From sequence record MN018232.1: 64,000 nt of DNA, one strand, 5' to 3'. A program made the translations under genes and the position numbers. The notes below the pieces were generated by a model that was not told where the DNA came from, searched no databases, and saw nothing but the letters and a program-made list of their open reading frames with translations. Below, one piece after another: positions 7,594 to 47,729 of this stretch (positions within the stretch are counted from its first letter, which is position 1; each line of letters starts with the position of its first letter).

Positions 7594-7628
7594 TATGATT
7601 AAACTAGACTGTCTTGTCTAGTTATTTA

Positions 7629-8261
7629 TCACTCAATCAGAACTTCACCAGCGTTAGAACCAGTAGACTGCAGTGAGTTGCCGATAGTGAAATACTGAAT
7701 ATCGAATTCAACATCGAAAGTTTCGAGTTGATCACCGTCGTCATAGCTCAGTGCAATCTCACTAATTCTGGTTGGGAAGATGTCATAGAACTTATAAGTT
7801 CTCAGGACTGCTGAATTACCACCTTCATTAGTGGTGGCAAATCTCTCAGCACCTCTACCCAGTTGAGTGACATATGCATCAGTCATGTAAGATGATGGGT
7901 TGGTAACACCAGTTGCATCATCTAGTTTGCTGATGGTGTTTGCCCATCTTTCAAACGCAGTTCTGAGTTGGAAGTCCTCATCATTGATGATTGTAACTGT
8001 CCATGCATCAAACGTTCTGTCACCAGCAACCTTCAGATTTCTACCTCTGAAAGGAACTTGGAAAGAGCTGGTGTTTGAAGCAGGAAGTTGTGCAGCCTTA
8101 CAAAGGAACTTGAAGGTTCCATTTTCTGACTGATCACCACTACCCCATGCATCAGCAATTGCTGATGGGAAGGTAGGAATCGAGACTTCGAATAGGTTGG
8201 GGCGGGCCCCACCGCCCGCCAGTCTTGATTTAAATTGTGATAGGGTTTTTGTTTCTGCCAT
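7629..8261 (-). CDS. g19: Tail tube protein gp19
   Basis: GGGARPNLFEV, FLCKAAQLP, FRGRNLKVAGDRTFDAWTVTIINDEDF. Confidence 0.98.
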   Translation of the reverse strand: MAETKTLSQFKSRLAGGGARPNLFEVSIPTFPSAIADAWGSGDQSENGTFKFLCKAAQLPASNTSSFQVPFRGRNLKVAGDRTFDAWTVTIINDEDFQLRTAFERWANTISKLDDATGVTNPSSYMTDAYVTQLGRGAERFATTNEGGNSAVLRTYKFYDIFPTRISEIALSYDDGDQLETFDVEFDIQYFTIGNSLQSTGSNAGEVLIE

Positions 8262-8292
8262 TGGTAAATCCTCCTTTTATTATTTACTATAA

Positions 8293-10722
8293 TCAAACAG
8301 TCCCTACAACTTCCTGGAAGTCAACACCAGTTCTGGTGGCAACGAATGTCAGGGTGATGTAGTTGATGGACTTGGTTGGCTTCAGGAAGATGTCAGCTCT
8401 GAACTCATTGTTATCAATGATGTCAGGTGTGTTGTTTGTTTCGTCACAAACTACGAGGAAGTCATACAGACCTCTCTTCGCCTGAACATCTCTAAGGTAT
8501 GGTTCAACAATGTTCACGAAATTAGCTCTCGTGTTGTCATCATTGAGTTCAAAGAGTTGTGAGTTAGCAGCACCCTCAAGTGCTTGTTCTACTGTAAGGA
8601 ACAATCTTCTTACGTTGATTCTGTCGAACGCAGATGAGTAAGCCAGAGCTGTCTTATCACCAAAGAGAACAATACCAGAACCCCTCTGAGAAATGATGGA
8701 GTTGATTCTTGCTCCGTAGAGCTCATCTCTTTGATTCTTCGATGGGTTATATGCCATCTTGACTGCGTTATTCAGGTTTCCTCTCTGGAGACCAGCAGGT
8801 GAGAACCATGGATAAGCTTCAATAGAAGTTCTGACACAAAGACCAGCAACGTCACCGTTAGTTGGGATGTAACGGAATTGGTTGTTGAATCTGTCGAAGG
8901 TGTACTTATAACCTGTGTCGAAGATCGCGTAAGACGAAGATGACAATGGGCTATAGAACTGAAGTACGTTCTGTGTTTGAGTAGCAGAGCTGGTTACATT
9001 AACAACGTTATCTCTGTGTGGGGAGATAGTTGCAATACAATCCTTTCTACCTTCTGCAAGAGAAATCAGATAGTTAGCTTTTGCTTGTGACTGACTTTCG
9101 ACTGCAAGACCTGGACCCATGAGGAGGTAGTCAACGGCAATCTCATCCTTATCAGCAAACAGTTGGTAACCATTTACCAAGTCAGAAAGGTCAGCACTCA
9201 TACCCTTGTTAGCACTGTAGTCAACACCACCCAAGAGTGTGTAACTTACATTACCGATAGAGGAGAACTTAGTAGCTAAAGCTTCCTGACCCCAGAGACC
9301 TTCGGATACGGTATATGGAGTGAAGTTAGTAGAGAACCCAGATGCAGTTGGAAGTGTATTCCAATAAGTATCTTCAGCTTGTGATGGGTTATAACCAGCA
9401 AAGATGAAGTTGGAGTTCAGTGCGATGTAATCCTTATAGTAGGTCTTAGTTGGATTGTCGCCATCCGCGACTGCGTCTTGTGCTTTAGACAGAGATGTGA
9501 AGGTCTCAAGGATGTTACCCTGAACACCAGTTACGTCTCCAGTGTCATCAACAACAACGACGTGAATACCATCATTCTTACCACCTCTAGAGGTGACATA
9601 CTGGTTATCAACAGGTCTCTCTGCAACGTTTCTCCAGTAAACTGTTGAGTTGGTAAGACCCAGTGTCTGTTCACCGTACCAATCCTTAACTGCGCCAGCG
9701 GTAACTGTACCACTTGCCGTTCCCGAATTGTTGGTAACATTAAGAATGTCAGCTTCAACGAATGATGCTGCTTGGTTGTACTGTTGATAAGTAACAGGAG
9801 TAACTGTACCAGCGGTAGAAACCAGGTTCTGGAAGGTAACTGCTGTACCTACAGTTGGGAGTGAAGCTGCAATACCAGCAGACAATGTGACTGAAGTGTC
9901 AGCAACGAAACCAGTAATTTCGATTGAACCACTACCAGGAGCCAAGAAATAATTGCCAGTTGTAATACCTGATGTGCTGTTTACACTAACGATTGTAGTA
10001 CCAGCAGCTCCAGTTGCAGAAGTAGTTGTAACACCGATAGTCAGATAATCTTCGGAGGTTGGGAATACTCTCTCAAGAACTCTAACTTCGATTGTGCTGT
10101 TACCGTTCTGTGCGTCAGTGTTAACACCTGTGATGATACCCTTGAGGTGACCAGAGAAAGAATTAACTGCACCAGCTTCAGGGATTGATATGCTGTTTCT
10201 AGCAGCAGATACACCGTAACCAACAACCAGGTTTGATGCACCAGGGTTAGTAGTAGCAACACTGACGATTTGGTCAGACTTGTTATCGATGGTACAAACC
10301 TTCAGGCTGTTAGCCCATGTACCAGGGTTTCTTGATGCCCAGTAGTAGCTTGTGTCGCTTCTATGGTTGAGTTCGTAGTCATCAACATTTTCGATTAGAA
10401 GACCAGTTGTTGATGCTGCACCAACACCTGCATTACCGTTGTTCAGACTTGTGCCAGATACTCTGACAACTTTGAGGATTCCACCATAAGAGAGGAATGA
10501 ATTACCTGTCATCCAGTACTCATACTGTCTGTCAGTGCCAATTGGCTGACCAAAAGTATCCAGGAATTGTTGTTGTGTCTCAATGGTAATTGGTTCGTTT
10601 ACAGGTCCGATTGGGAATGGACCAGCAATTGCACCAATGTTGTCAAGAACGTTCTCAGCTCTTCCAACAGTTAAGTCAACTTCCCTGACTAATACTCCTG
10701 GAGATAATTGAGGAGTAGCCAT
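8293..10722 (-). CDS. g18: Tail sheath protein gp18
   Basis: SPGVLVREVDLT, PWFSPAG, FDRINVRRLF, FLKPTKSINYITLTFVATRTG. Confidence 0.98.
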   Translation of the reverse strand: MATPQLSPGVLVREVDLTVGRAENVLDNIGAIAGPFPIGPVNEPITIETQQQFLDTFGQPIGTDRQYEYWMTGNSFLSYGGILKVVRVSGTSLNNGNAGVGAASTTGLLIENVDDYELNHRSDTSYYWASRNPGTWANSLKVCTIDNKSDQIVSVATTNPGASNLVVGYGVSAARNSISIPEAGAVNSFSGHLKGIITGVNTDAQNGNSTIEVRVLERVFPTSEDYLTIGVTTTSATGAAGTTIVSVNSTSGITTGNYFLAPGSGSIEITGFVADTSVTLSAGIAASLPTVGTAVTFQNLVSTAGTVTPVTYQQYNQAASFVEADILNVTNNSGTASGTVTAGAVKDWYGEQTLGLTNSTVYWRNVAERPVDNQYVTSRGGKNDGIHVVVVDDTGDVTGVQGNILETFTSLSKAQDAVADGDNPTKTYYKDYIALNSNFIFAGYNPSQAEDTYWNTLPTASGFSTNFTPYTVSEGLWGQEALATKFSSIGNVSYTLLGGVDYSANKGMSADLSDLVNGYQLFADKDEIAVDYLLMGPGLAVESQSQAKANYLISLAEGRKDCIATISPHRDNVVNVTSSATQTQNVLQFYSPLSSSSYAIFDTGYKYTFDRFNNQFRYIPTNGDVAGLCVRTSIEAYPWFSPAGLQRGNLNNAVKMAYNPSKNQRDELYGARINSIISQRGSGIVLFGDKTALAYSSAFDRINVRRLFLTVEQALEGAANSQLFELNDDNTRANFVNIVEPYLRDVQAKRGLYDFLVVCDETNNTPDIIDNNEFRADIFLKPTKSINYITLTFVATRTGVDFQEVVGTV

Positions 10723-31606: not shown

Positions 31607-33166
31607 TTAGAATTGCAAGATAACTTTAACGTCTTCTTTCTGTGAAGATGATCTGGTGACTGATGGCCTATTATCAACATAAATGATGTCACCAGAGTAC
31701 TTTTGAGACTCTGGATTTGAAATTCCACTATTGAATTCCTGACCCAGATAGTAGGTACGACTATTTATTGTCGTAGATACACCTGAAAAGTTTTGGTCAA
31801 TATTGAGTGTGTTACCTGAAGTTGGTGAGATTTGGATACTACCACCTGTTGTAGGTGATGATGTAAACTTCAATTGTTCAAAACCATATACAGGAACAAC
31901 GTTCTGAGTGCCATCAGTATTGAATCCTGCAGTCCTTCTGTCCTGCCAATACTTCAAAATACCAGTCTGTTGGTCATAAGAAACAACTCTACCGATGGCT
32001 GTTGAACCTAAACCAACGGTTTGTGTAACAAAACTGTCTGCGGTAAAGACTGCTTCACTGTAACCAGTACCAACAAGCTTCAATGCATAGAGTGCACTGG
32101 CTTTATCTTTGGTCAAATTGGTTGTTGAGTTGTAATTTGTTGGATTTTTGACGATTCCAACCTGTGCAAACTGGTTTCCAGTGATAAAATCGGGATTTTG
32201 GGTGTCATTTTCAAATCTAGCATAAGAAAGTACGTTATAAGCACCCAATTCACGATAAATATCGGCACCATGACCACCTGGAGGAGGAATAATTACGTTA
32301 AAAACGGGTGCGACACTGCCATTTGGGACACCACCATTCTCTAAATCGAGAGTTCCGAAGGAATATCCACTTCCTCCTCTTGAAATTGTCACAGATTCGA
32401 CTTTTGAGTCGTTATTGATGACAACTGTAGCCTCTGCACCACGTCCATCGCCTAAAATTGGCACTCTTGTGTAGGTAACATTGGCAGTTCCGATGCCAAC
32501 TCCACGATTTCTGATGGTAACAACCTTTAATTGACCACTTGTGCCTGCATTTTCTCTTACAGCAGAGTAAGAACTGTTGGTTTCCCAGTCAGTTGGGACT
32601 GCAATATAGTTTGTTGAGTCAAATTTGATGATTTGATTCGGCTTAATCGTATAAAGATACTTCCAAATATAACCATCACCACTGCTTCCAGCCTCTCTTG
32701 GCTCCAAATCTGTGAAATTTGGCTCGTCAAGAGAAGGACCACCTCTAAAACTATTCTCTGGATTAGCGTTATTGAACAGACAGATATAAACTTTATACTC
32801 ACTATTCATTACATAATAGTTGGAGTCGTAAATGTCATACGATCCAGATGGTTGAGATGGGTTATCTCTATCAATATCATTCCTCCACATGTCATATGTG
32901 GTACCAGATTGCCAGGTAATTTTCCTTATAACCTGGCTTACATCACCCGAATTAATCTTTTTAAGGGCCAACATGGTGTCCCAGTAATAGTTGGAGTCAT
33001 CCAAACTATCTTTTGGGGCAGGTGGATTCGAGTTCCAATCACTCTGAAACTCAGGAGCATCTGGTAGACCAATCCACGCATAGTAAGAATTAGAAGAATC
33101 TTGTACAGAATCGACAAAATTCTTCGCATTCAAGATACGCAGTTGATCAGTAATTATCGCAGCCAT
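31607..33166 (-). CDS. g8: Baseplate wedge protein gp8
   Basis: WQSGTTYDMWR, YKVYICLFN, DGYIWKYLY, YSGDIIYVDNR. Confidence 0.9.
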   Translation of the reverse strand: MAAIITDQLRILNAKNFVDSVQDSSNSYYAWIGLPDAPEFQSDWNSNPPAPKDSLDDSNYYWDTMLALKKINSGDVSQVIRKITWQSGTTYDMWRNDIDRDNPSQPSGSYDIYDSNYYVMNSEYKVYICLFNNANPENSFRGGPSLDEPNFTDLEPREAGSSGDGYIWKYLYTIKPNQIIKFDSTNYIAVPTDWETNSSYSAVRENAGTSGQLKVVTIRNRGVGIGTANVTYTRVPILGDGRGAEATVVINNDSKVESVTISRGGSGYSFGTLDLENGGVPNGSVAPVFNVIIPPPGGHGADIYRELGAYNVLSYARFENDTQNPDFITGNQFAQVGIVKNPTNYNSTTNLTKDKASALYALKLVGTGYSEAVFTADSFVTQTVGLGSTAIGRVVSYDQQTGILKYWQDRRTAGFNTDGTQNVVPVYGFEQLKFTSSPTTGGSIQISPTSGNTLNIDQNFSGVSTTINSRTYYLGQEFNSGISNPESQKYSGDIIYVDNRPSVTRSSSQKEDVKVILQF

Positions 33167-33191
33167 GTTTAGAGGACTTTTTTCTTATTTA

Positions 33192-34681
33192 TTATGATAA
33201 TGTGAGACTTGTGGAACCGATACCAGCAACTGTAAATGTTAGAGTAGTTCCAGAGAACGTAATCTGAACACCTTGAGTAGATGCCGCACTTACAAATCCA
33301 CCAATTGCAGTAACAATACCAGTGTTATACTGATTAGTTGCCGTAACAACACCTAATGTCGATACACCAGTAACTACTAATGAATCTGCATTTATATTTG
33401 CAGTGTTTGCAACACCAGTGTAACTAATTGTCGAAATACCAGAATTTGTGGTAACACTTATATTGGATCCAGCAGAGATAAGTGTAGTAATTCCTGTTAC
33501 ATTAGAAGCATCAGCACCAGTCAGAGTGGTGACTACACCAGTCATTCCTGAACCATCAGCACCAGTCAGAGTGGTGACTACACCAGTCATTCCTGAACCA
33601 TCAGCACCAGTCAGAGTGGTGACTACACCAGTCATTCCTGAACCATCAGCACAGTCATTCCTGAACCATCAGCACCAGTCAGAGTGGTGACTACACCAGT
33701 CATTCCTGAACCATCAGCACCAGTCAGAGTGGTGACTACACCAGTCATTCCTGAACCATCAGCACCAGTCAGAGTGGTTACAACACCAGTCAGGTTCGAT
33801 CCATCACCATAATATGTTGCACCAGTTACGATTCCAAGAGTAGAAATACCAGATACTTTGAAATAACCTAATACATCAGCACCACCATGTTTTGTTTCAA
33901 ATCTCTTATTGTTGTTATAATACAGCTCAACACCATAGTTTCCGTCAACGTTAGTTGACATTACTTGTGTTGTTCCAGCACCACTAGTAAAGTTTTGGGT
34001 ATCTGCCTTAATATTTAAAGCACCTGTATTAGCTCTAATGACATTCCCATCAGAGTCATTATGGAAGATAGTAAATTCTGATTGTTCTCCTAAGATAAAT
34101 TGTTTGTCATCGGTCATCAATAAAGATGAACCAAGACTTACAGTACCCGTAAGTGTGGATACTCCTGAAACATTAATACTTCCTGCAGAATGACCTGCAC
34201 CAACAAACATTGATCCGAAAGTACCAACACCCGTGATATTAATATTTCTACCTGTTACTTCATCATAGACAATATCATCAGACACATAAAGATCACCACC
34301 AACATACAAATCACCACCAGTGGTAGTAATACCGCCTTGACTTGCAAGTGTTGTGATACCAGAAGTAAGAAGTGTAGTTACGGTAGTTACACCTAACGTT
34401 GTAATACCAGCTACCTTTAGATTTCTAGAGATATCTACATCCGTCGTCGCAATGGAGACTGGAGTAGGTGCAGAAATTTCAACGTATCCTGTTGTTGTAT
34501 TTACAGCAACATTTGTTCCTGCAGTGATGGTGGTTACAACACCTGTAGCAAGTGATGAACCGTCACCAATGAGATTATAGATCTCACTAAAGTTACTGTT
34601 GATTTTAATACCACCAGAAACTAGTGAATCACCTGTCCCATCATTAGGAGCTGAGCCAGTGTTAATACCTTGGTATGCCAT
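33192..34681 (-). pseudogene. gp9/gp10-like baseplate-fibre gene split by a frameshift (ORFs 33632-34681 and 33192-33635)
   Basis: N-terminus GINTGSAPNDGTGDSL..GGIKINSNFSEIY; the two ORFs are contiguous halves of one repeat-containing protein, broken at a 23-bp defective unit of a 45-bp repeat. Confidence 0.75.
33509..33792. repeat. 45-bp tandem repeat encoding MTGVVTTLTGADGSG
   Basis: Five identical 45-bp units (starting 33509, 33554, 33599, 33667, 33712), one 23-bp broken unit (33644-33666) and one degenerate partial unit. Confidence 0.95.
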
Positions 34682-34715
34682 CTACTGTAGGATCCTTTTC
34701 TATGTTTTATTTATT

Positions 34716-37700
34716 TTAAGTTTGATAGTTATTAAACTTCAAAGGTCTGAATCTCTGAACCAATGGTGAGCTAGTAATACCTGTGTATGAATTAGGTGTA
34801 AACTCAAGTGCATCTGTGGTTGCTCTATTCAAGAATTGAATCTTACCCCATGTGTATTCACCGAGATTTCTCCCTCTTATGAAACCAGCTACCGTGGTAC
34901 CAAATCCAACGTTTGCAACCTCAACTCTTCTAATTGCAGTTGTTCCAAGACCAACTGAGGTCAGATCAACTGTGGAATTATAAGCAGCAGATACCTGATA
35001 GATATTGTCACTTGTGCTTGTAGACAGACCAAAGTTTGAAAGATTGACCACAAAATAATCACCAGTATTGAGTTGACTGATAGTAACTGCGGTACCTACA
35101 ATATTGGGATCTCTCATGTAAGAATTCTCTGGAATATAAAGTTCAAGTGTTCCAAGAGCACCTGTGGACTGTGCATATCCAACAATCTGTCCAAGATCAC
35201 CAAAGTAAGAACTGACACCAATTTGTTCTCTTCTAACGGAAGGTTGTTGAATAAGAACACTAGGTGCCTGAGTGTATCCTGTTCCTGCATTAGAGACAGA
35301 AATAGATACCACTCCATCACCAGTTACTGATGCAATACCTGTTGCTCGGGTTCCATTAGGATTATCTGGTAAAGATACTGATACTGAAGGAGTTGTTAGA
35401 TAAGAATAACCGGCACCAACATTACTTACGGTAAATGATGTGATTATTCCACCATAATCATTATCTACAACATATCCTGATGCTCCTGCTAGACTTGGAT
35501 CGTCTTGTGCTGGTGTATTACCATCTTGGAATATGCTTCTAATAGTAACAAGTGATGGTTTACTAATGACTGGAGCAATGTATGTGTTATGGAATGCATA
35601 ACCTAATGGGTTATTTGCTTGAATACCTGCTTGGGTACGCATTGAATCACTCCACTCTGGAGAAAGACTTCCATTTTCCCACAAACTTGTGTATTCAAAC
35701 ATACAGAAGTTTAGTAAGTATAAGTATTCTTTAGCCGCTACTTCAAACGCATCTGCATCTGTTTTCCAAGTATTTCCACCATATCCTGATGAATCCCAAA
35801 AACCTCCGTCATATGCTTCTTCCATTGCTGCATATAAATCACCTGTCTGCCAATCAGATGCCAAGTAACTGTATAGTTTTATAGTATCTGCAGGTAAACC
35901 ATGCATGTGTAGTGTATGGAATACGTGCTCAATAACTTCTTGTGCGTCTTGATCACCATCACCATATCCACTACCAGTTGAGTTCAAGTACCACACCATG
36001 TCATTTTGAACAGTGGTGTCAAATAAGTTAGTTAAGTTCCAATCAATAATACCTTGGTCAGTTAGGAAGTTTGGAGTATAGTCTGCTCCTGCACCTCTTG
36101 CTACTCTTTGAATAGTTGGTTTACCTGCGTGGTAAGTTCCCGAGTCACCACTCAATGTTTTGATCAAGTTTCTTTGGGATGTTTCATTAATACCTGCACC
36201 ATTTACATCTGTAAACAGTTCAACCATACGAGCAACTTTTTCTACCCATACATCTGGAACTGCTATTTGTCCGCCAGTTGTACCTGCAGATACAATTCTT
36301 ACACCATTAACTGTGACTTCACGTTTGAATAAATCACTACCGTCACCAACAAGATTAATAATTGGACCATTGTTATATTCTGGATCTACACCACTACCAG
36401 TAGATGCAGTAGCAATTGCAGATGCAATTGGTGATTGATCAATAATAACAATTCTATCTTGATAATCTAAGAGTGAAGTTTCATTTGTAGAATTGAAGAA
36501 TGGTCTTACAGTGTCTGTATAAGCAACAGCACTTGAGGTTCCAACATAAGATGTCAGATATGCTGCAGGATAAATTGATGGTTCATACTCAACTCTATCC
36601 TTAGTTACAAAGTCACCATTGATAGTGATATCGTCAGTTTGCTTACACCATGTAAGCGGTCTTACAAGTGCTTGATTTGTAGTAATACCAGGACCGTCAT
36701 AAGGGAATGTTCTAACAGTATCAAGAGTTGTAATACCAACTACGGTTCTTGGTTCTTGATATAAACCAAATCCTTGACCCTTAGTAGAATCATTCTTAAG
36801 TTGTAAAGTGTCACCTACCTTGACAGTTTCAAGAATATCAACCAGAACAACATCAACATCAGGTGTACCTTTGTAGAAGATGATCTTTGATGTGTCACCC
36901 TTTTTGGGAGCCTCTGTAAATTCAATGATAGAACCACCATTAAACTTATACGACTGATTTGGTACCTGAAGAATGTCATTGATGGTAACAATCAGACATT
37001 GTGCAATGTTGATGTCGGAACCATCTGCGGTTTCAATAGCAAATCCAGCACCAGCGATAGTGAGTGGGAATCTCTTCTCTACACCATCGAACAAGGTATC
37101 GAGTTTATCAAATACATCGAGTTCACCGACCGTAAATCCATTGAATGTGTCACGATAGGTAGTTGAAACCGTGAGTTGGAATTCATCATATGTGTAACTT
37201 GTATCAGTCTGGATACCAGTTGTACCACCAATAGAGAGTCTTAATACCTCTCCATCACCATAACCAAATCCACCACTTACAATATCAAAGTTAACAACAC
37301 TTGAACCCTGACCAACTGTGATGTCTACACGAGCACCTGTACCCATTCCAGTTTGACCGTCCGCATAGACCAGAGGAATATTTGAATAGGGAAGAGGTGC
37401 ATCAATTACGATAAGAGGAGGGTTATTCTGATCAAGGTTTGCTCCAAAGTAACTGGTTGTGATTGCAACAACTTGTCCATTCTGAACGGTTGCTGTACCG
37501 ATGTTCACAACTGTTGTGATGCCAGTTGAAGAAACTGCATAACCAACATTGACTGTTTGAACACCAACTCTATATCCAGATCCAGGATTACCAATTTCAA
37601 CAGATGTAATCGTACCACCACCAGATACAAAACATGATGCACCAGCAGATATCAATGGTTGATATCCAAGACCTGGAGTAGACGCCACAGAGATGATTGT

Positions 37701-40700
37701 TCCACCTCTTGGAATCGTTGCCATATTAGGATCAGATTCTGAAGATACACTGTCACCAAGATAGGTGATACTTGTAATACCTGCGGTTTCTAGGAGTGTG
37801 AAGTCACCAGTGGTATTTTGAGCTCCCTGTGGTTCTTGTAAAATGTTAGAGTTAAGAATAATTGCCTGATTAGTTGCAAAACCAGTTACATTATTACCAT
37901 TTTGTACAAGTGAGAAGAACTTAGTTTGACCATTGAACTGACTTTGAATATTGTCAAAAGTGTAATTGGTGCTGTAAGTATCAACAGAATCATCAGTGAT
38001 ACCACTTCTCATAAATGTTCTACCTTGGAAAGTAGAATAAGTTGTGATACCAGACCAGTCAATATTATCAGGACCTTGTGTAGTAGTGCTGAGTGGAGTT
38101 GCGCCGAATGGAGCTTCTACAAAGTGAAGTGTGTTATCGACAATATTGTAATTACCACCAAGAAGTTCAACGGATGTTCCGATGTTGTGTGTGGCAACAC
38201 CAGTACCCATTTGACCTCTCAGAACTCTGAATTTGTTTGTTGCTCCAACACCAACGTCTTGAAGTAACATAATCTCACTATCAATCTTGATAATGTCATT
38301 TGCCTTGAATGATTGAATACCAACAACATCAAAGTCAACATCAAATACGACGTTTTGATCAAGTCTTGTAGATACATTGACTTCAGTTACAGGTGCCTGA
38401 ATCATGTTATCAACAGCAACAAGAGCTCTAGCATTCTGGTTAGTTGCAGTCAACTTATGGAATGTACCAACACCAACAGAAGTCAGATCAAGTGCAATTG
38501 GTGATCCAGCAAGTGCATCAGTTGCACTCTTTGCAAATCCAACAGACTTATTACTGTATTTGATGATGTAGAGTTCAGATGGTAACTTGTCTGTTGACAC
38601 ACCTGAAACAGTTGTCGTTGCAATACCGATAGCATTGGCAGTAGACAACTGTGAGTTCTCATAACTATAATTTACCTTTTCACCAGTGACAAAGAAGTGA
38701 TCTGGAATTGTTACCTGATTTGTTGACAGATTTACAATCGAGGAATCGTTACCAAGGAATGCTCTCTGGAAGATTGGGAGAGTATTATGTTTGAGGTTGA
38801 ATGCTCTCTTCTTATCAAATTCAGTACCAGTATATGTTCCATAATCAGAGAACAGAATGTTATTTTGTAAAGCACTGATTGACGCAATACCAACAATATT
38901 GTTAAAGTTCTTCAGACCAATACCGAAGGTTCTAACAGCTACATCAATACTTGGATTTGGTGTAAACACCAGACTTACTGAGGTACCTGATGTAACAGCA
39001 CCAACTGTTCCTAAACCAGAGTTAGTACCAATACGTCCATACTTAACAATGTTTTGGTTATTGGAGTCAAGAACATGACACTCAAACATCTCATATTCAT
39101 TATTGGTGGTGTCATGGACAGTCACCATGAAGTATTCACCAGCAAATGGATCTTCATATGCTGCAATCTCATTTGCAACTGGAGAACCAGAAGCAGAGAT
39201 TGACTTATAATATGATGAAAGGTTTGTAACACTCATCTCAGTAGTGTTAACACCTACTGCTGTAATATTAGTTTCAATAGAAATGATATTGGCAGTAACT
39301 GCTGTTCCTACAGTCGGTACAATGTTAACATCAATAAATCCTCCACTAATATTTGCTGTGTATGTACCAAACCCAGATGAAATACCCTCAGTAGAATCCA
39401 CATCTCCATATTGAAGAAGTTGTACATTTGTACCATCATGTAATACATTCAATTCAGTGTAGAAGTAGTTGTCTTCGGCATCTTCCAGTTGAACATGAAG
39501 TTTTGCAGATCTACTTACTGTTGGAACTTTTACCAGAGTGGTAGTTGTCGAAACTGGTACAGTTACTGATGATGATGCAATAGAAACAATGTCACCAACT
39601 TGAGTTGAACCAACACTAGTCAGACTTTCAACACCACTAAATGTGAAGTATGAAATATCATAGTTGTTATATTCAAACAGGTTGGGGAAGAATGTAAGAC
39701 CCCACTCACTGGTACCAGCACCGATGTAATCAAACGAACCCAGTGATTTACCCGTGTCGATAGTACCGTATTGATTCACATAACCTGTTGTACCATCTTG
39801 AAGAACAGTTACTACACCGAACTGTTTTCTACTTCTCAGTTCTCTGTCCTGAACCAAAGTAAAGAACTTGTTCCATGCATACTTATTATCAAAGAAATCA
39901 ACGATGGAATACTTTGTTTCTCTTGGATTACTATTAAACTCACCACTAAAGTCATCAATCTTAAGAACTCTGTTACCTCTTGATTCAAAGTAATCTACGA
40001 GAATTTTGTTTTCAAATACAATCTCATTAGAGATGGTTTTACCACCATTAATATCAAGAGTTAATTCAGTAGCACCATCAAAGTCAGGGAAACAATTAAG
40101 CATTCCCTCCCCGATCAGATCAACAACGGTTTCAATCTGGAAATCAACTGCTGAAGCAATACCAGCAGCATTGTTGTCAATAACGAGATCAGCAAACTTC
40201 TCAAAACCTGCAGTGTGGTTCAGTGAACTAACTGCATCATCCCATGTCTCATATGGAACTCTTGATTTGAGTGAATATGAAAAGTTCTGATAATATTCGT
40301 TGTTTGGAATGACTTGAAGATTGTCGTTCAGGAATCCAGAATTGGTCTGCCATCCATCTACGAACGTTGCACCAACACCAAGTCTGATAGTCGAATCAAA
40401 ATCAATATTACTGATAATGTTTGCTTTGTTTCCAGATGATTGGGACTCTAAAATTGTGCCAACTTCAAAATCGTCTTCAGACGAAACAAATAAATAACCA
40501 CTTGTGGCATCAAATCTTTCAACCCTACCAACATAGCCAATATTAGTAACTCTTTCTCCCTCAAAGAAGTTTGTTGTGACGAGTTTTGAATCAAATATTG
40601 GGAAGAATGACTCAGGCGTTACAGAACCAGAAATGGAACTTGTAACTTGACCAGGGAATTCGCCTGGTGCAAGATAATCAGTCAGATTGTATTCAATATA

Positions 40701-43700
40701 CGCATTTGCACCACCAATTTGACTATCGAGTGCAGTTACCTCAAACAACGAATAGTTATAATCTTCAGAGTTGTAACCTCTACCAGTAGTATTGAAACCA
40801 ATTGCAACGTTCTCAACAATTACCTTCTCACCAACTTTAAATGGCCAATCTTTTACTTCACTAAACTGTTTGGAGAAGGTAAGTCTGACAATCTTGTTGG
40901 TCGAGTTATAAGATACAGAACTTATGCTGAAACCATTTGTATTTTGAGTGGGAATAAATGTTGGTGGAACATTATTCAGTGATTTAGTGTTTTCGATAAT
41001 ATTGACTTCATTGTCACCAAGTTCATAATCAAGTTCGATATCAGTGATAACTTGATTAGTAAATCCATCAATAACAATAAGATCAGGTGCCTGGCTGTAG
41101 TTGACACCACCAGATGAAATACCGATTGATTCAAAAGAACCAAGAGGATCTACTCTCAATACCTGTGGTAAATTACCTACAACATTAAGAGTCTTATCGG
41201 ATGGATAACCAAAACCAATGTAGTTGAATTTAGTTCCTAGAACACTACCAATGGTGGTAGAGGATGGTTGAATTAGTGCACCTGTACCATTCTTACTCGT
41301 AACTGAAGAGAAACCTGGGAGAGACTTATACCCTACGCCTTTGTTGAGTGCATTGATCTTGTTGATTGGCCCATTTGCAGTCAATGATGAAGTATCATAC
41401 TTCATAGTTGCATTGGTGGTACCATATGAGACTACAGTGTCGTAGTCAAAAGGAATATTATATTCAAAAGTATCTGATGTAACACCAACTACATTATAAA
41501 TTCCATCAAATTTGTTTTTAGTAAGATTAATACTATTGTTATTGATAACAGTATCATCTTTAAACAATCTCAACTTGACTGGAGGAATAATATCCAAATT
41601 GTCGGGACTGAATCCGTAGTAGAGATTATTTGGAATGTTATCACTCATAAACAGAGTGAGATTTGCAGTAGTATCTACACCAACCACACCAGACTTTGTA
41701 ACCTCAAAGTTTCTATCAGTTCTTGTTGTCCAGAACTCATTGACTTCTTGTGAGTCACTATAGATGAACATATCAAATGCAGAATAAGTAATACCCTTAT
41801 CAACAAATGAAAGTGATGTATCAGATAAATCAAACTTGATGTATTGATTCTTTTGTGCCCTTACTCCAGGGTTGATTTTGGAAAGGGTTCCCGTGGTGGC
41901 AGAACCAACATTCACAAAAGTAGGATTCTCACTCGATAGTTCTGACAGATATTCAACTAGTTTAATCTTATTATTCATATAAGAGTAAACATAATACATC
42001 CCAGATGCGGTCAAATTCTCTGATGGATCACCAGAAGTATAGATAACTTTATCACCTGTAAAATACTTGTTCTCAGGAACGATGAATGTATTGTTATTGG
42101 TATTGATGCCAGCCGGTTCAATAGTGTCAGGATCAAACACAATTCTTCTATTGAAGTCATCATATTTGACTTGAATTGTGGTTGTGGTTGTTGGATTGAC
42201 ATCAATAGTAATGATGTCACCTCTCTTCATACCATGAGTTTGTGCGGTAGATACCGTGACAACGTTTTTTGAGACTCTACCTTTAATTACAGATGTTATG
42301 TTGGTATTGAAGCTATGGTAACTTCCAAGACCTACAGCGGATTCGAAGTATAATAACCCACCCTTCTCGGTGTTAATACCAACATATTGACCAACAGAGT
42401 TCACACCAACTCTTTGAGTTGCGATACCAATAATATCTTTGGATAATGGAACTGCAAAGATATTTCTGGTCTCATCAAGATTAAATGTAGGTGTACTTGT
42501 AATACCACTCCAACACGCAATAGATGTTCCACCATTGGTATAATAAGTCATTGGAGTGTTTAATGACAACTTATGATCTGGGAGATAGATCTGTTGTTGA
42601 TCAACTCTGACCTGTGTTAAACCAACACCTGGATTTGAGAATGTAATTGTAGTCGCAGTACCTACAGTTGATGTACCTACACCAACTGCCTCGTTTGGAG
42701 TAAAGTATAACTGTTTATTAATTGTAAGATTTCTCTGAGTATTGATACCTGTTGAGAGGAATCTGAGTTTTCTAGGATCATCTCTAACAATAGTACCTGC
42801 AGAGTGGGCAACTGCAAGTGTTCCATCAACACCTCTAAGAACTCTGACTCTACCAGATTTTTCATCAATGTTGAGAACTTTTAATTTTTCTCTTTCAATT
42901 CTGAGAATATCATTTGCTCTAATCGAATCCTCACCGAAAGGACCATTCATATAAACGTAGGTCACAATACCAGTGACAGTATCAGTTCCTATTCCTAGTG
43001 ATACATACCATCTTTCACTTGATACACCGACCGAATACGACCCAGCGAATCCTTTGTAGTATGAAGATAACCCATCAATGAAAATTGTATCTAATGGTAA
43101 GAAGTTGTGTGGAGCTGAAGTAATACCAACAAACCCATTAGCACTTCCTGTACTTGTAAACTCCACATTTTCATAAGATGTAGTGGCAAGACTTACACTG
43201 TTTACATTCTTACCCTTAAGTTGAGATACTCTAAAGTTTGCATTTCTACCGCCAGTATTAGTTGAATTGAGTTCAACCCTATCACCAATCTTGTATCCAT
43301 CACCTGGATCCAAAATAGCCATACCATCAACACTACCTGATGATGTTGCAGTAATGTCTAAAGACTGATTTCTAAGTTTGTCTGAATTGTAAATGTAATC
43401 ATATTGACTATTTCCGCCATTTGTGAAATAGTTCTTAGTATTTCTAAACCACCCATCTCCCACAATATTGTAATGAGTTTGATTAGACGCTGACTTGAAG
43501 TTGAATGGAATTGGTAAGGAATTATAATCGTTTCCAATTACATATGGGAACAATGGTCTTCTGTAGTTATTAAATGGACCAGAAGAATCTACAGTATCAG
43601 AGATAGTACAGAAGTATGCATATACACCGTTTGGATAATCTGGTGTTACACAGAAACGACCATTGTGTTCATCAAGATCACCGTCACCAGCATAGATATA

Positions 43701-46700
43701 GTCATCTACAAAGAATCCGTTAGGGAATGCATTGTATGAAGGTCTATTGACAGGAGTATTCTTGAGTTTGTAACTTGTAACCATTCTACGAATGTTACCA
43801 GTTCCATCGATATTATCGAAACCGTATGGACCATAGATTGGATTACCATCGTACGCCCAACCTACGATTGGTGAGTGATACAAACTATCAATTTCTTCTC
43901 CACCAACACTTAAAGTTAAGTCAAAAATACCATATTTGATATTGTCCTCCCCAAAACCATTTAATGAGTTTAGTGACTCTCTTAATGGTCTAGGTGCATA
44001 AACTGCTGCATACTGAAGTGACTTGTTTGAAATGTTCTCCTCAATAATGCAGTCATCATCTTTAAAGTTGGAAAAGTTTCTTTCAAATAGGTTGATATTC
44101 CATCCTCTAATATTTGCCTGAGTTTTTGCACCAGATCCAGCAGGTATTACATCAATTGTGGTCTTACCAGTAACATATCCTGCACCACCTTTTTGAACAT
44201 AGACACTTTCTATCTCACCATTATTAATGATTGGCACTAAGATTGCAAAATTACCTGTCTCACTTACAATGTTGAGATCAGGTGGTGCATTGTAACCAGA
44301 ACCACCTGAGTTTACAATAACCTCAACAATCTTACCATTGTTGATAATTGGTGTTAGTTTTGCTTTTGAACCAGACTCAAAGGTGATTTCGGGTTGTCTT
44401 CTAAAATCAACAATAGTTGATGCACCATAACCAACACCACCATTGGTCAAGTCAATACTTAAGATCTCTCCTCTAAAGACAGGTTGTAGTTTTGCTTCAT
44501 AAAGAAGAATATTACCGATGAATGGATCATCACTAATCAACCAGTTTGCATCAGCACTAACCAAAACATAGTATGGATTTGTGATCTCTGCTTCAGTATC
44601 AGTCCATGCAAGTACTGATACAGGAGTGATAATATTCTCTTCAATTGGTGATTCAATAATATAAAGTTCTTGGAAGTCCTCGACAAAGGTCTTATCGAAC
44701 GATGCTGCTGCACCTTCTACTTCAACAGTGATTGGTGGATAGTTAAATGAACCTACGCCCTGTTTTGTGAAGTTAATACAGATTCCTCTATCATAATAAT
44801 AGTCTCTTTCTACAGATCCAGTACCAACTTCTGTCAGTGCAAATGCATCATCATTAATCTTTTTAACAAAATAATCTTTATCTTCACTCAGACCCTCAAC
44901 TCTTGGAGTTCCTCTTGTATATCTTACAACTTCTTTCGATTTATAACCGTGATTTAAAATTTCAACTCTATCTGATACTGTATTGATACCAGCTGTTGAA
45001 ATAGTTCTCTTTTTGTTTTCGTAACCTACACCAGGATTAGTAACTACAACACTTGATACAACCTGCTTAAGTTCTTTTGCAACAAGATATTGCACACCAT
45101 CACCATAACCTGCTAAATCAACAGTGTTGATACCTGCAAATACATCTCCTTTTGTGGTATGAAGTTGAATACTCTTTTGGCCAGTTACAAATACAAAATA
45201 CTCACCACCAGTATTCAGTCCAACAATACCAGATGTATTTCTTGGTTCATAGATTACACTTTCACCATCTAAGAATTTGTGATCGGTCTCAAATGTAATC
45301 TCATCTGTTGTGAGATTTACATCACTTGGGAAATTGGCGACGAAAGAATTTTCAAGTTTGATTGAAGTCATTCTTGGTTCTGCCTGTGCACCAGAACCAT
45401 TACCACCCTTGATTGTAATCGTTGGTGGTGCATAATAACCCATACCAGGGTCAGTAACATCAAGCTTTACAAGTTGACCTTTTACGTTAGCAACACCTGT
45501 TGCACCAGTTCCTACCTCATCGACAATCTTTACTACTGGTGGATTGATAATATCGTATCCAGTTCCACCACTTGTCATAGTGAAGTCAAGAATATCACCA
45601 TAATAAACACTACTGGATGACTTATAGTTTAACAACTCAAGACCATTAACAAAAATACCTGTATATCCTGAAGTTGTTTTCTCTATTCTCTTTCTATTAG
45701 TAGGACTTAGAATCTTTCTGTAGATACCCTGTGGTTGAATCGTTTTACCATAAAAATCAAGGTAACTTAAAGAAGCATTTACTACAGACCCATTAAATGT
45801 AATATATGATTCTCTTGTAAGGTCTGCATTACTTCTTGCAAGTTTGATTTCACTTTCATTTACTCTGTAGACAAAGTAAGAACCAGTGGTAACTCCATCA
45901 AAACCATTACCTGCAGATTGGAAATATACTGAGTCACCTGTGTAGAAACCGTGATCGGGTAATGATGTTGGGTTAGTTGGTAATGGTAAAATGTCGGTGC
46001 TCAGTAATGATGCAGAGAAAGTTACTTTCTTATCGTAAGTATTTGTCTCAATGTCATTATATTTTGGTAATGAGTTAGATGATATAAGAACATCACCATT
46101 AAACTTTGCATATGTATTCTGTACATTGGCAACAAAATTCTTGATATAAGAATGACTTGTAGACGAACCCTTGAGTAATTGATTCTCAAGATAGAATGTA
46201 CCTGAAAGATTGATCTGTTGTCCGAACCTTACATTAATCTCATTCTCTGATACAATTCTAGTGACTGTTCCGAGGTTTGATACAGTGCCATCTTCGTTTT
46301 CATATCTGAGTTCATACCCCTCTTGGAAGAAGTGATCATTATAAAGTTTAAAGTTATATACGAATGCATCAGCATCAATTACAGAACTTTCAGCAATTTT
46401 AAATTTTGTTTGGACGTTAAGGACATAGTTATTTGCTTTCTTTCCAGGTGCCTCATATCCAAATGATTTAATCTCAATAGTGTCATTCTTTTTGAAGTAA
46501 TATGTTGGATCGTTCTGTACAAAATCCTTCAGGGTAGATGTAAATCTAACCCTGATTTCTTGTGAGGTATCAATACCAACATAGGCATATGAGAAAGAAT
46601 CTAACTTAACGTCAGACTTCTTATTCAATGAATTGGTCAGACCAGATACGTTAAAGAACTGGTTTGTGGTCTTTCCACTATATGCAACACCAATCGCATT

Positions 46701-47729
46701 ACCATCAACATCATTGACGACTAATTTACCATATTCAGGAAAGTCAACGGTTGAATCAACATCAAGAACCGTTGAACCAAAACTTACAGAGGTAAGGAGT
46801 TTTGTAAGGGGGTTAGGTTCAAACTCACCAAAAATAGAACCTGTTACGTCAGTATCTCTTGCAAATCCAGCATCAATACTAATCTGATAGAATTGATAAT
46901 CATCATAAGGAATCTGTTGTACATTAGTTACAGATCCTCTTGCATTCGTTCTCTTTTGGAAGATTGTAAGGTTCTGAAGATCTAATGGATCACCCTGAAG
47001 TTTCTCAACTACAAAGTCTTGAGTTACTCTATAGTTTGCATTAGAGGGAGTCAGAAGGAACTGTGATGGTTTGAGAATCTCTACATCTTCACCATACAGT
47101 GCTCTAAACAAGATTTCAAAGGACTGATCAGTACCCTTTGAAGAATAAAAACTATCTGAGTTGTAGATAAAGTTTTTGGAGTTTAATCCACTATAAAAGT
47201 TGCGATCAGCAAAACCAGGAGTAAACTGTCCCTTAATCTTCTTAAAGAACTGTTTGAGGAAAAGAACGTTCAGGTTGACAACTTCTGTTCCAAGTAAATG
47301 AGTATCTGCTTCAGTCTGAGAGAATGTTAATTCATCTGGTGCACCTGTGGTGACATAGGTGGTGATACCACTGAATCCTCTTCTACAGTTCTGAAACTCA
47401 GTGTCAGTCTTTGTTTCGTAGAATATAATTTCATTATCAATCTGAATGATACCGTTAGTCTCAGAGAAACCTTCTGTCGATACTACAGTAACAAATCTAT
47501 CATTATAATCTAAAATTTCGGCAAGAGTCGTTGATTCGACAATATCGTATAATTCTTCTACCTTTACATACTGGTCAATATTGTTGATGATATCAACAGG
47601 ACCACTTTGGTATTCTTGTGATACGTAATACTGCTCTAAAAAATCCGATAGGAGAGGAAAGTCTTCTCTAACGTATCTGGGAAGTTGACTAGCTACAATT
47701 TCCTGGAATTTGACTCTATCTACTGCCAT
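34716..47729 (-). CDS. g7: Giant baseplate wedge initiator (gp7-like), 4337 aa
   Basis: Between g6 and g8; SQLPRYVRED.P, YSSKGT.QSF.ILFRALYG, many G.GY..P.V repeats, HSPIVGWAYDGNPIYGPYG. Confidence 0.8.
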   Translation of the reverse strand: MAVDRVKFQEIVASQLPRYVREDFPLLSDFLEQYYVSQEYQSGPVDIINNIDQYVKVEELYDIVESTTLAEILDYNDRFVTVVSTEGFSETNGIIQIDNEIIFYETKTDTEFQNCRRGFSGITTYVTTGAPDELTFSQTEADTHLLGTEVVNLNVLFLKQFFKKIKGQFTPGFADRNFYSGLNSKNFIYNSDSFYSSKGTDQSFEILFRALYGEDVEILKPSQFLLTPSNANYRVTQDFVVEKLQGDPLDLQNLTIFQKRTNARGSVTNVQQIPYDDYQFYQISIDAGFARDTDVTGSIFGEFEPNPLTKLLTSVSFGSTVLDVDSTVDFPEYGKLVVNDVDGNAIGVAYSGKTTNQFFNVSGLTNSLNKKSDVKLDSFSYAYVGIDTSQEIRVRFTSTLKDFVQNDPTYYFKKNDTIEIKSFGYEAPGKKANNYVLNVQTKFKIAESSVIDADAFVYNFKLYNDHFFQEGYELRYENEDGTVSNLGTVTRIVSENEINVRFGQQINLSGTFYLENQLLKGSSTSHSYIKNFVANVQNTYAKFNGDVLISSNSLPKYNDIETNTYDKKVTFSASLLSTDILPLPTNPTSLPDHGFYTGDSVYFQSAGNGFDGVTTGSYFVYRVNESEIKLARSNADLTRESYITFNGSVVNASLSYLDFYGKTIQPQGIYRKILSPTNRKRIEKTTSGYTGIFVNGLELLNYKSSSSVYYGDILDFTMTSGGTGYDIINPPVVKIVDEVGTGATGVANVKGQLVKLDVTDPGMGYYAPPTITIKGGNGSGAQAEPRMTSIKLENSFVANFPSDVNLTTDEITFETDHKFLDGESVIYEPRNTSGIVGLNTGGEYFVFVTGQKSIQLHTTKGDVFAGINTVDLAGYGDGVQYLVAKELKQVVSSVVVTNPGVGYENKKRTISTAGINTVSDRVEILNHGYKSKEVVRYTRGTPRVEGLSEDKDYFVKKINDDAFALTEVGTGSVERDYYYDRGICINFTKQGVGSFNYPPITVEVEGAAASFDKTFVEDFQELYIIESPIEENIITPVSVLAWTDTEAEITNPYYVLVSADANWLISDDPFIGNILLYEAKLQPVFRGEILSIDLTNGGVGYGASTIVDFRRQPEITFESGSKAKLTPIINNGKIVEVIVNSGGSGYNAPPDLNIVSETGNFAILVPIINNGEIESVYVQKGGAGYVTGKTTIDVIPAGSGAKTQANIRGWNINLFERNFSNFKDDDCIIEENISNKSLQYAAVYAPRPLRESLNSLNGFGEDNIKYGIFDLTLSVGGEEIDSLYHSPIVGWAYDGNPIYGPYGFDNIDGTGNIRRMVTSYKLKNTPVNRPSYNAFPNGFFVDDYIYAGDGDLDEHNGRFCVTPDYPNGVYAYFCTISDTVDSSGPFNNYRRPLFPYVIGNDYNSLPIPFNFKSASNQTHYNIVGDGWFRNTKNYFTNGGNSQYDYIYNSDKLRNQSLDITATSSGSVDGMAILDPGDGYKIGDRVELNSTNTGGRNANFRVSQLKGKNVNSVSLATTSYENVEFTSTGSANGFVGITSAPHNFLPLDTIFIDGLSSYYKGFAGSYSVGVSSERWYVSLGIGTDTVTGIVTYVYMNGPFGEDSIRANDILRIEREKLKVLNIDEKSGRVRVLRGVDGTLAVAHSAGTIVRDDPRKLRFLSTGINTQRNLTINKQLYFTPNEAVGVGTSTVGTATTITFSNPGVGLTQVRVDQQQIYLPDHKLSLNTPMTYYTNGGTSIACWSGITSTPTFNLDETRNIFAVPLSKDIIGIATQRVGVNSVGQYVGINTEKGGLLYFESAVGLGSYHSFNTNITSVIKGRVSKNVVTVSTAQTHGMKRGDIITIDVNPTTTTTIQVKYDDFNRRIVFDPDTIEPAGINTNNNTFIVPENKYFTGDKVIYTSGDPSENLTASGMYYVYSYMNNKIKLVEYLSELSSENPTFVNVGSATTGTLSKINPGVRAQKNQYIKFDLSDTSLSFVDKGITYSAFDMFIYSDSQEVNEFWTTRTDRNFEVTKSGVVGVDTTANLTLFMSDNIPNNLYYGFSPDNLDIIPPVKLRLFKDDTVINNNSINLTKNKFDGIYNVVGVTSDTFEYNIPFDYDTVVSYGTTNATMKYDTSSLTANGPINKINALNKGVGYKSLPGFSSVTSKNGTGALIQPSSTTIGSVLGTKFNYIGFGYPSDKTLNVVGNLPQVLRVDPLGSFESIGISSGGVNYSQAPDLIVIDGFTNQVITDIELDYELGDNEVNIIENTKSLNNVPPTFIPTQNTNGFSISSVSYNSTNKIVRLTFSKQFSEVKDWPFKVGEKVIVENVAIGFNTTGRGYNSEDYNYSLFEVTALDSQIGGANAYIEYNLTDYLAPGEFPGQVTSSISGSVTPESFFPIFDSKLVTTNFFEGERVTNIGYVGRVERFDATSGYLFVSSEDDFEVGTILESQSSGNKANIISNIDFDSTIRLGVGATFVDGWQTNSGFLNDNLQVIPNNEYYQNFSYSLKSRVPYETWDDAVSSLNHTAGFEKFADLVIDNNAAGIASAVDFQIETVVDLIGEGMLNCFPDFDGATELTLDINGGKTISNEIVFENKILVDYFESRGNRVLKIDDFSGEFNSNPRETKYSIVDFFDNKYAWNKFFTLVQDRELRSRKQFGVVTVLQDGTTGYVNQYGTIDTGKSLGSFDYIGAGTSEWGLTFFPNLFEYNNYDISYFTFSGVESLTSVGSTQVGDIVSIASSSVTVPVSTTTTLVKVPTVSRSAKLHVQLEDAEDNYFYTELNVLHDGTNVQLLQYGDVDSTEGISSGFGTYTANISGGFIDVNIVPTVGTAVTANIISIETNITAVGVNTTEMSVTNLSSYYKSISASGSPVANEIAAYEDPFAGEYFMVTVHDTTNNEYEMFECHVLDSNNQNIVKYGRIGTNSGLGTVGAVTSGTSVSLVFTPNPSIDVAVRTFGIGLKNFNNIVGIASISALQNNILFSDYGTYTGTEFDKKRAFNLKHNTLPIFQRAFLGNDSSIVNLSTNQVTIPDHFFVTGEKVNYSYENSQLSTANAIGIATTTVSGVSTDKLPSELYIIKYSNKSVGFAKSATDALAGSPIALDLTSVGVGTFHKLTATNQNARALVAVDNMIQAPVTEVNVSTRLDQNVVFDVDFDVVGIQSFKANDIIKIDSEIMLLQDVGVGATNKFRVLRGQMGTGVATHNIGTSVELLGGNYNIVDNTLHFVEAPFGATPLSTTTQGPDNIDWSGITTYSTFQGRTFMRSGITDDSVDTYSTNYTFDNIQSQFNGQTKFFSLVQNGNNVTGFATNQAIILNSNILQEPQGAQNTTGDFTLLETAGITSITYLGDSVSSESDPNMATIPRGGTIISVASTPGLGYQPLISAGASCFVSGGGTITSVEIGNPGSGYRVGVQTVNVGYAVSSTGITTVVNIGTATVQNGQVVAITTSYFGANLDQNNPPLIVIDAPLPYSNIPLVYADGQTGMGTGARVDITVGQGSSVVNFDIVSGGFGYGDGEVLRLSIGGTTGIQTDTSYTYDEFQLTVSTTYRDTFNGFTVGELDVFDKLDTLFDGVEKRFPLTIAGAGFAIETADGSDINIAQCLIVTINDILQVPNQSYKFNGGSIIEFTEAPKKGDTSKIIFYKGTPDVDVVLVDILETVKVGDTLQLKNDSTKGQGFGLYQEPRTVVGITTLDTVRTFPYDGPGITTNQALVRPLTWCKQTDDITINGDFVTKDRVEYEPSIYPAAYLTSYVGTSSAVAYTDTVRPFFNSTNETSLLDYQDRIVIIDQSPIASAIATASTGSGVDPEYNNGPIINLVGDGSDLFKREVTVNGVRIVSAGTTGGQIAVPDVWVEKVARMVELFTDVNGAGINETSQRNLIKTLSGDSGTYHAGKPTIQRVARGAGADYTPNFLTDQGIIDWNLTNLFDTTVQNDMVWYLNSTGSGYGDGDQDAQEVIEHVFHTLHMHGLPADTIKLYSYLASDWQTGDLYAAMEEAYDGGFWDSSGYGGNTWKTDADAFEVAAKEYLYLLNFCMFEYTSLWENGSLSPEWSDSMRTQAGIQANNPLGYAFHNTYIAPVISKPSLVTIRSIFQDGNTPAQDDPSLAGASGYVVDNDYGGIITSFTVSNVGAGYSYLTTPSVSVSLPDNPNGTRATGIASVTGDGVVSISVSNAGTGYTQAPSVLIQQPSVRREQIGVSSYFGDLGQIVGYAQSTGALGTLELYIPENSYMRDPNIVGTAVTISQLNTGDYFVVNLSNFGLSTSTSDNIYQVSAAYNSTVDLTSVGLGTTAIRRVEVANVGFGTTVAGFIRGRNLGEYTWGKIQFLNRATTDALEFTPNSYTGITSSPLVQRFRPLKFNNYQT

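Follow-up and report, generated by a model that had tools for sequence, protein, structure and literature searches.

A mobile domain with a predicted zincin-like fold and a conserved EHxxH motif in the giant baseplate protein gp7 of cyanophage S-B43

We report that gp7, the giant baseplate wedge protein of cyanophage S-B43 (MN018232.1), carries a globular domain of 313 amino acids (aa) that interrupts one of its beta repeats, that is found in otherwise unrelated cyanophage baseplate proteins and that has an unannotated family of relatives in marine bacteria. The window analysed here, a stretch of 64,000 nucleotides (nt), is the first 64 kb of the S-B43 genome. The open reading frame (ORF) list and its translation place the gp7-like gene (4337 aa) at positions 34716–47729 on the minus strand, on which all S-B43 features described below lie; the inserted domain, zincin-like in its model and of an unannotated family, occupies 35451–36389 (gp7 aa 3781–4093), and tblastn of the insert gives identical coordinates. 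With a probability of roughly 0.5, we read this mobile domain of an uncharacterised marine family as a zincin-like, non-canonical metallohydrolase, most likely an endopeptidase, mounted on the baseplate. The original prediction, made from the letters alone, had put an insert of ~310 aa at 35455–36390 of a giant gp7 baseplate protein: the insert is confirmed, its coordinates shift by a few bases, and the host protein is borne out by a match to PHROG 2885 ('baseplate wedge subunit') with E = 0.

That the segment is a true insertion is seen by comparison with phage S-B05 (MH920638.1), which, like S-B43, was isolated on Synechococcus sp. MW02. The S-B05 gp7 matches its S-B43 counterpart residue for residue through aa 3775 and then lacks the segment, with the repeat running unbroken across the insertion site (...ATVTVSVAGTVTGFTISTGGQGY...). 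At the DNA level, window positions 36407–40232 show 2 mismatches in 3826 nt against S-B05 (99.95% identity), and the match ends at the edge of the insert, where 1051 nt in S-B43 correspond to 112 nt in S-B05, a net 939 nt or 313 codons. Because the S-B05 DNA is near-identical up to 36407 and then lacks exactly 313 codons, the module is a genuine insertion that gp7 can do without, placed at the turn of one beta repeat, and the mosaic (recombination) junction between the two phages coincides with the domain boundary. Past the site, the S-B05 protein is strongly diverged for ~70 residues and then near-identical to the C terminus in the protein alignment; DNA identity downstream of the insert (33001–35355), covering the gp7 C-terminal tail and the following genes, is 91–93%. 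The diverged part comprises the C-terminal half of the split repeat and the next repeat (35235–35450, aa 4094–4165, from protein and DNA alignment), which differ from S-B05 far more than the rest of gp7 does, arguing that they were exchanged together with the insert. The flanks are kept and the segment is likewise missing in many other gp7 homologues, a presence/absence comparison that the original prediction had proposed as a check: S-SM2, Bellamy, S-SCSM1, P-TIM68 and ACG-2014f match both gp7 flanks and not the module, and among the gp7 homologues listed with both flanks it is there only in the S-B43 clade (three records whose match extends over 80% or more of the 838-aa C-terminal query).

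The boundaries fall within one immunoglobulin-like beta repeat, ~250 residues before the gp7 C terminus. Its N-terminal half ends in ATASTGSG (36390–36413, aa 3773–3780), within which the S-B43/S-B05 identity breaks at ~36407, and its C-terminal half resumes with GIITSFTVSNVGAGY (35406–35450, aa 4094–4108) directly after the insert. Since the following intact S-B43 repeat reads ATGIASVTGDG-VVSISVSNAGTGY, the insertion is placed in the G-x-G turn of the repeat. The claim that the insert splits a single structural repeat thus agrees with the unbroken repeat of S-B05, and the flanks and motif strings quoted for it were all found on the minus strand. The composition had been described as rich in Trp, Tyr and His; this is right for Trp (2.6% in the insert versus 0.6% in the whole of gp7) and His (1.9% versus 0.7%) but not for Tyr (5.4% versus 5.1%), and Met is raised as well (1.9% versus 0.7%). 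The GC content of the insert (0.37–0.40) does not differ from that of the flanks (0.36–0.42), so base composition offers no hint that it was acquired recently from a foreign source.

Beyond the S-B43 clade, tblastn located the module in a small set of phages (85 of the 50,697 phage records, none below 80% identity), the carriers being the three records of the S-B43 clade, the S-RIM12/Syn33 lineage and the S-RIM2 lineage. It is 80–92% identical in the gp7 proteins of S-RIM12, Syn33 and S-RIM2, which are otherwise unrelated to S-B43 gp7. In S-RIM12 gp7 (1723 aa) the module spans aa 720–1059, and the remainder of the protein does not align with S-B43 gp7 except for two short weak matches, one of them in the YHYH region. 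A module common to both proteins within an unalignable remainder argues that it travels as a unit between unrelated baseplate proteins.

Scans of the insert against Pfam (E up to 1), NCBIfam and PHROGs returned no match, a Pfam scan of the insert with its flanks gave none either, and phmmer and family-profile searches of PDB sequences yielded chance matches only (LeuRS, RPD3, FixL). An AlphaFold2 model built on a 30-sequence alignment (predicted local distance difference test, pLDDT, 90.5; predicted template modelling score, pTM, 0.91) shows a beta hairpin and a pair of helices, then a strand, a short helix, strand 131–134 and the long helix 145–164, followed by a helical lobe with the long helix 212–230. 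This order reproduces the two-lobed zincin layout of a sheet with a backing helix, an edge strand, an active-site helix and a C-terminal helical lobe. A replicate model of a 31%-identical Prochlorococcus domain, built from a different alignment, reached pLDDT 91.3 and gave the same ranking in fold searches: for both models zincins fill ~40 of the top 50 structural-search rows, headed by the M34 Pro-Pro endopeptidases (PPEPs) and lethal factor. The scores are middling (Z at most 7.0; Foldseek E at least 0.06), and Foldseek searches of PDB or BFVD, the replicate included, gave no match at E ≤ 0.001; its top PDB rows, all non-significant, were M1 aminopeptidase, lethal factor and PPEP. Language-model features, compared for the phage domain and an Actinomarinales homologue, placed ATLF, Peptidase_M90 and Peptidase_Mx1 as the nearest named clusters (0.77–0.84; ATLF, PF07737, 0.81–0.84), which serve as leads only. 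The zincin-like fold of the original prediction is thus backed by the ranking of two models, though with middling scores and no profile-level link, and in these models the insert has the architecture of zincin metallopeptidases, with M34 Pro-Pro endopeptidases and lethal factor as its closest matches.

The resemblance could be coincidental, reflecting a common alpha/beta layout in a new fold of unrelated function whose His/Glu motif has no link to the zincin site. The missing sequence or profile link would fit such a reading, but we regard it as quite improbable: two independent models give the same zincin-dominated ranking, the language-model features indicate the same families, and the invariant motif sits on the helix after the edge strand in the hydrophobic register of HExxH helices.

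This motif was defined over 183 domain sequences aligned to the family hidden Markov model (residues are numbered along the domain). It reads E151-x-x-E154-H155-x-x-H158-T159 (35913–35939) and lies on the predicted active-site helix 145–164; E154, H155, H158 and T159 are present in 183/183 domains and E151 in 180 (98%). E221-Y222 (35724–35729), midway along the next long helix (212–230), a candidate 'glutamate helix', is kept in 182 of the 183 and offers a candidate third metal ligand. The stretch D130-M-V-W133-Y134-L-N136 (35982–36002) precedes the motif helix as model strand 131–134, in the zincin edge-strand position, with D130 in 182 and W133 in 180 domains. Q94 (36108–36110) is found in every domain, Y104 is among the invariant aromatic residues, and the loop P244-E245-W246 (35652–35660) is invariant in the family alignment. 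The original prediction had seen a His-rich metal site in QEVIEHVFHTLHMHG (aa 3930–3944; 35898–35942) with a downstream Glu ligand, citing LYAAMEEAYDGGF (aa 3965–3977) and EVAAKEYLY (aa 3996–4004), and had called the motif not a canonical HExxH, which holds family-wide, where it is EHxxH. Two of the four His (H155 and H158) are invariant together with E154, but H161 is kept in 90% of the domains and H163 shows no conservation. A downstream Glu is retained as E221 of EVAAKEYLY, but not in LYAAMEEAYDGGF, where position 190 varies among 30 aligned homologues and E191 is either E or Q; being non-invariant, these residues are unlikely metal ligands. The invariant T159, Y222, E245-W246, D130 and Q94 had been overlooked.

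When the family helix V-I-E-H-V-F-H-T-I is set against F-I-H-E-F-G-H-A-V of lethal factor, the hydrophobic positions coincide one for one. This register suggests that the first zinc-binding His and the catalytic Glu have been swapped, E154 corresponding to the first His, H155 to the Glu and H158 to the second His, as judged from periodicity. The lethal factor catalytic core (2l0r, 106 residues) aligns to residues 126–281 of the Prochlorococcus model, and a helix count that starts at the C terminus and makes room for the additional P-E-W loop puts the counterpart of E221 at lethal factor E735, which is likewise followed by an aromatic residue, as in E221-Y222. E221 would be the likely third metal ligand, with E245 as an alternative candidate. 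A ferritin-like diiron motif, considered because of the ExxE/HxxH spacing, was rejected: no ExxH spacing occurs, and the fold is not a four-helix bundle.

The domain also stands apart from its nearest structural relatives. PPEP-1/2/3 (Zmp1; MEROPS M34) have no detectable sequence or profile similarity to the insert, which lacks a Pfam ATLF match; they carry HExxH, whereas the insert has EHxxH, is ~100 residues larger and possesses extra helices and the conserved P-E-W loop. Lethal factor, edema factor and Certhrax belong to a toxin context and the insert does not. Several observations weigh against the assignment to a metallopeptidase-like enzyme. No HExxH occurs within the domain, on the active-site helix or elsewhere, its place being taken by the family motif E-x-x-E-H-x-x-H-T. 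Aligned by hhalign, the family profile and the anthrax lethal factor catalytic domain (M34), whose first motif His and Glu appear to have traded places in the insert, show no match (probability 0.1%), and neither sequence nor profile assigns the insert to MEROPS M34 or Pfam ATLF. The choice of E221 over E245 draws on aligned ranges and helix order in the models. Finally, S-B05 infects the isolation host MW02 without the module, so the domain is not needed to infect MW02 and is accessory; it may modulate host range or infection efficiency.

The non-canonical motif would also suit a non-catalytic binding module, an adhesin or receptor-binding domain descended from a zincin or similar to one, in which the His and Glu residues hold a structural metal or contact a ligand, in the manner of the degenerate zincin-like domains at the N termini of lethal factor, edema factor and Certhrax. 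On the baseplate such a domain would add contact with the host surface. Domain shuffling in baseplates and fibres mostly concerns receptor binding, the module was exchanged along with a neighbouring repeat, and relatives have adhesion-type partners (He_PIG, cadherin, Flg_new_2 and FG-GAP). However, E151, E154, H155, H158, E221, E245 and D130 are kept down to ~25% identity, in secreted bacterial and in phage proteins alike, and such conservation is typical of a catalytic or metal site, not of a binding surface; the motif is gone from the degenerate zincin domains known to act in binding, and an N-terminal domain followed by RTX repeats resembles secreted enzymes such as serralysins. We hold this explanation to be possible but unlikely.

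The bacterial relatives show where else the domain is used. A word search found 166 relatives of the module, and a profile search of 1.84 billion representatives found 330 clusters at E ≤ 1e-3. Many are stand-alone proteins of 350–440 aa with lipoprotein-type signal peptides (lipoboxes) and acidic linkers; in distant members the domain is N-terminal and is followed by RTX repeats, DUF4214 or FG-GAP. Further fusion partners are Peptidase_S8, He_PIG, cadherin and a baseplate-wedge domain, and Flg_new_2 and FG-GAP are additional partners in relatives, along with one weak CBM_5_12 neighbour. Genome loci with homologues come from Actinomarinales, Opitutales, Flavobacteriaceae, SAR86, SAR324, Gammaproteobacteria, Dehalococcoidia, Marinimicrobia and Prochlorococcus, every one of these lineages being marine. 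The synteny of the homologue genes is kept within Actinomarinales and within Opitutales, and a 97-kb Acidimicrobiia contig has one copy among fab genes, PPDK and PntB. The family is unannotated and marine-restricted, its bacterial members being predicted to be secreted as lipoproteins or as RTX/type I substrates.

Two of the Peptidase_S8 fusions lie on phage-like marine contigs (locus L088, 1006–2646; locus L089, 455–4513) and would be cases of two protease-like domains on phage structural proteins. One Peptidase_S8 fusion adjoins a CBM_5_12/Peptidase_S74 fibre gene and genes for a 2OG-Fe(II) oxygenase and a Trp-halogenase. In another reading, the domain is a metal enzyme that has a zincin-like scaffold but a non-peptide substrate, for instance a surface glycan or a lipid head group, or that performs an oxidation, as HExxH-domain alpha-ketoglutarate oxygenases do. 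The swapped motif would make a Glu/His/Glu-type site with more carboxylates than classical zinc peptidases have, the invariant W133, W246, Y104, Y222 and Q94 are residue types common in sugar-binding clefts, the weak CBM_5_12 neighbour points the same way, and the depolymerases known so far from tailed phages are mostly glycan-active. Yet endopeptidases provide the strongest and fullest structural matches, the enzyme to which the domain is repeatedly fused is a subtilase, and no glycoside hydrolase or lyase is among the top fold-search rows, which makes this reading improbable.

A quick, unrooted maximum-likelihood tree groups the bacterial copies by phylum and places the cyanophage clade (support 97) inside a group (99) with Actinomarinales and one Opitutaceae lipoprotein, the Prochlorococcus clade standing well apart; as the tree is unrooted, no direction of transfer is claimed. 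Capture from the cyanobacterial host was considered and rejected, both because the Prochlorococcus copies are ~31% identical and form a separate clade and because the phage copies fall together with lipoproteins of Actinomarinales and Opitutaceae and with other phage-like sequences.

Returning to the reading of the insert as a metallohydrolase and most likely an endopeptidase, the domain would bind a divalent metal through E154 or H155, H158 and E221 and would hydrolyse a host-surface polymer. This polymer is most likely a protein, in view of the PPEP-like fold and of the repeated fusions to subtilases. The original prediction had named S-layer, pili or a mucus-like matrix, which would be putative substrates of such a peptidase. 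Multiple copies at the baseplate periphery could cut a proteinaceous surface layer or a giant surface protein, which would let the phage reach its receptor. Giant RTX/cadherin-type surface proteins of marine Synechococcus and Prochlorococcus are candidate substrates; SwmA and SwmB are giant surface proteins of marine Synechococcus. An enzyme domain on the virion that removes a host barrier before attachment has counterparts in phage virion depolymerases and in baculovirus enhancin, a virion metalloprotease of the M60-like type; compared with known phage depolymerases, the insert differs by its place inside a repeat of gp7, the baseplate wedge protein, and by its peptidase-like fold. A BFVD structural search with the insert model gave no significant match, with baculovirus ORFs heading the weak list. 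The fold class itself is known, but its defining HExxH motif is lacking, the family is unannotated, and a placement within a cyanophage gp7 repeat has not been described; in the literature searched we found no account of the insert domain or of an EHxxH zincin variant.

Some homologues have neighbours worth recording. The copy of Prochlorococcus marinus MIT 1012 (locus L036, 3926–5677, plus strand) combines the domain with RTX and DUF4214, has no signal peptide and adjoins the gene of a giant Big_5/cadherin/FG-GAP/DUF4214 surface protein (6030–8840, minus strand). PPEP genes adjoin the genes of their substrates. In Acidimicrobiia/Actinomarinales, the lipoprotein gene is always preceded by a gene for a protein of ~1200–1300 aa (L003, 3979–7878; L008, 3–3569; L010, 2–3787), of which the L003 copy, the one looked up, had no Pfam match; this neighbour could be a partner or substrate. 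Locus L004 (8001–9299) contains a stand-alone copy of 432 aa whose N-terminal domain is distinct; its 207-kb phage-like contig also has genes for ribosomal protein S21, DnaJ, HSP20, PhoH and RNase HII.

The host protein is assigned to T4-like gp7 by its profile match and its position beside gp8, and its GenBank label is 'baseplate wedge initiator'. T4 gp7 has ~1000 aa, whereas S-B43 gp7 has 4337; the PHROG 2885 match and the gp8-side gene order are shared, and most cyanophage giant gp7 homologues are without the module. The sole Pfam match in S-B43 gp7 is a YHYH domain (PF14240; aa 1280–1377, window 43599–43892, E 2.5e-26); in S-RIM12 gp7 the stretch related to this region comes after the module. 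In S-B43, gp7 is followed by small ORFs and then by a 519-aa ORF (31607–33166), which occupies the place of the annotated T4-like gp8 of S-B05, downstream of gp7. Between the two (33192–34681) S-B43 has two ORFs of 349 and 147 aa with a 4-nt overlap, where S-B05 has one 458-aa 'unclassified head protein'; blastn of the two phages over this interval gives short matches that are duplicated.

Almost no functions have been assigned within the giant gp7 proteins of marine cyanomyoviruses, and a catalytic module on the baseplate, if true, would give a handle on how these abundant phages pass the cyanobacterial surface. S-B43, which has the module, and S-B05, which does not and is near-identical upstream, form a natural comparison pair. 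If the domain is active, a strictly conserved EHxxH on a zincin scaffold would widen the motif space of metallopeptidases. More tentatively, and with some doubt, the family may be a new one of zincin-fold metalloenzymes (EHxxH plus E-Y) whose first metal-binding His and catalytic Glu have changed places, active and widespread as enzymes secreted by marine bacterioplankton and repeatedly captured as a cyanomyovirus baseplate protease that removes surface proteins of the host and thereby shapes host range. It is unannotated in Pfam, NCBIfam and PHROGs yet is present in dominant marine lineages (Actinomarinales, SAR86, Opitutales, Flavobacteriaceae and Prochlorococcus), and a function for one of its members would annotate many secreted proteins of ocean bacteria.

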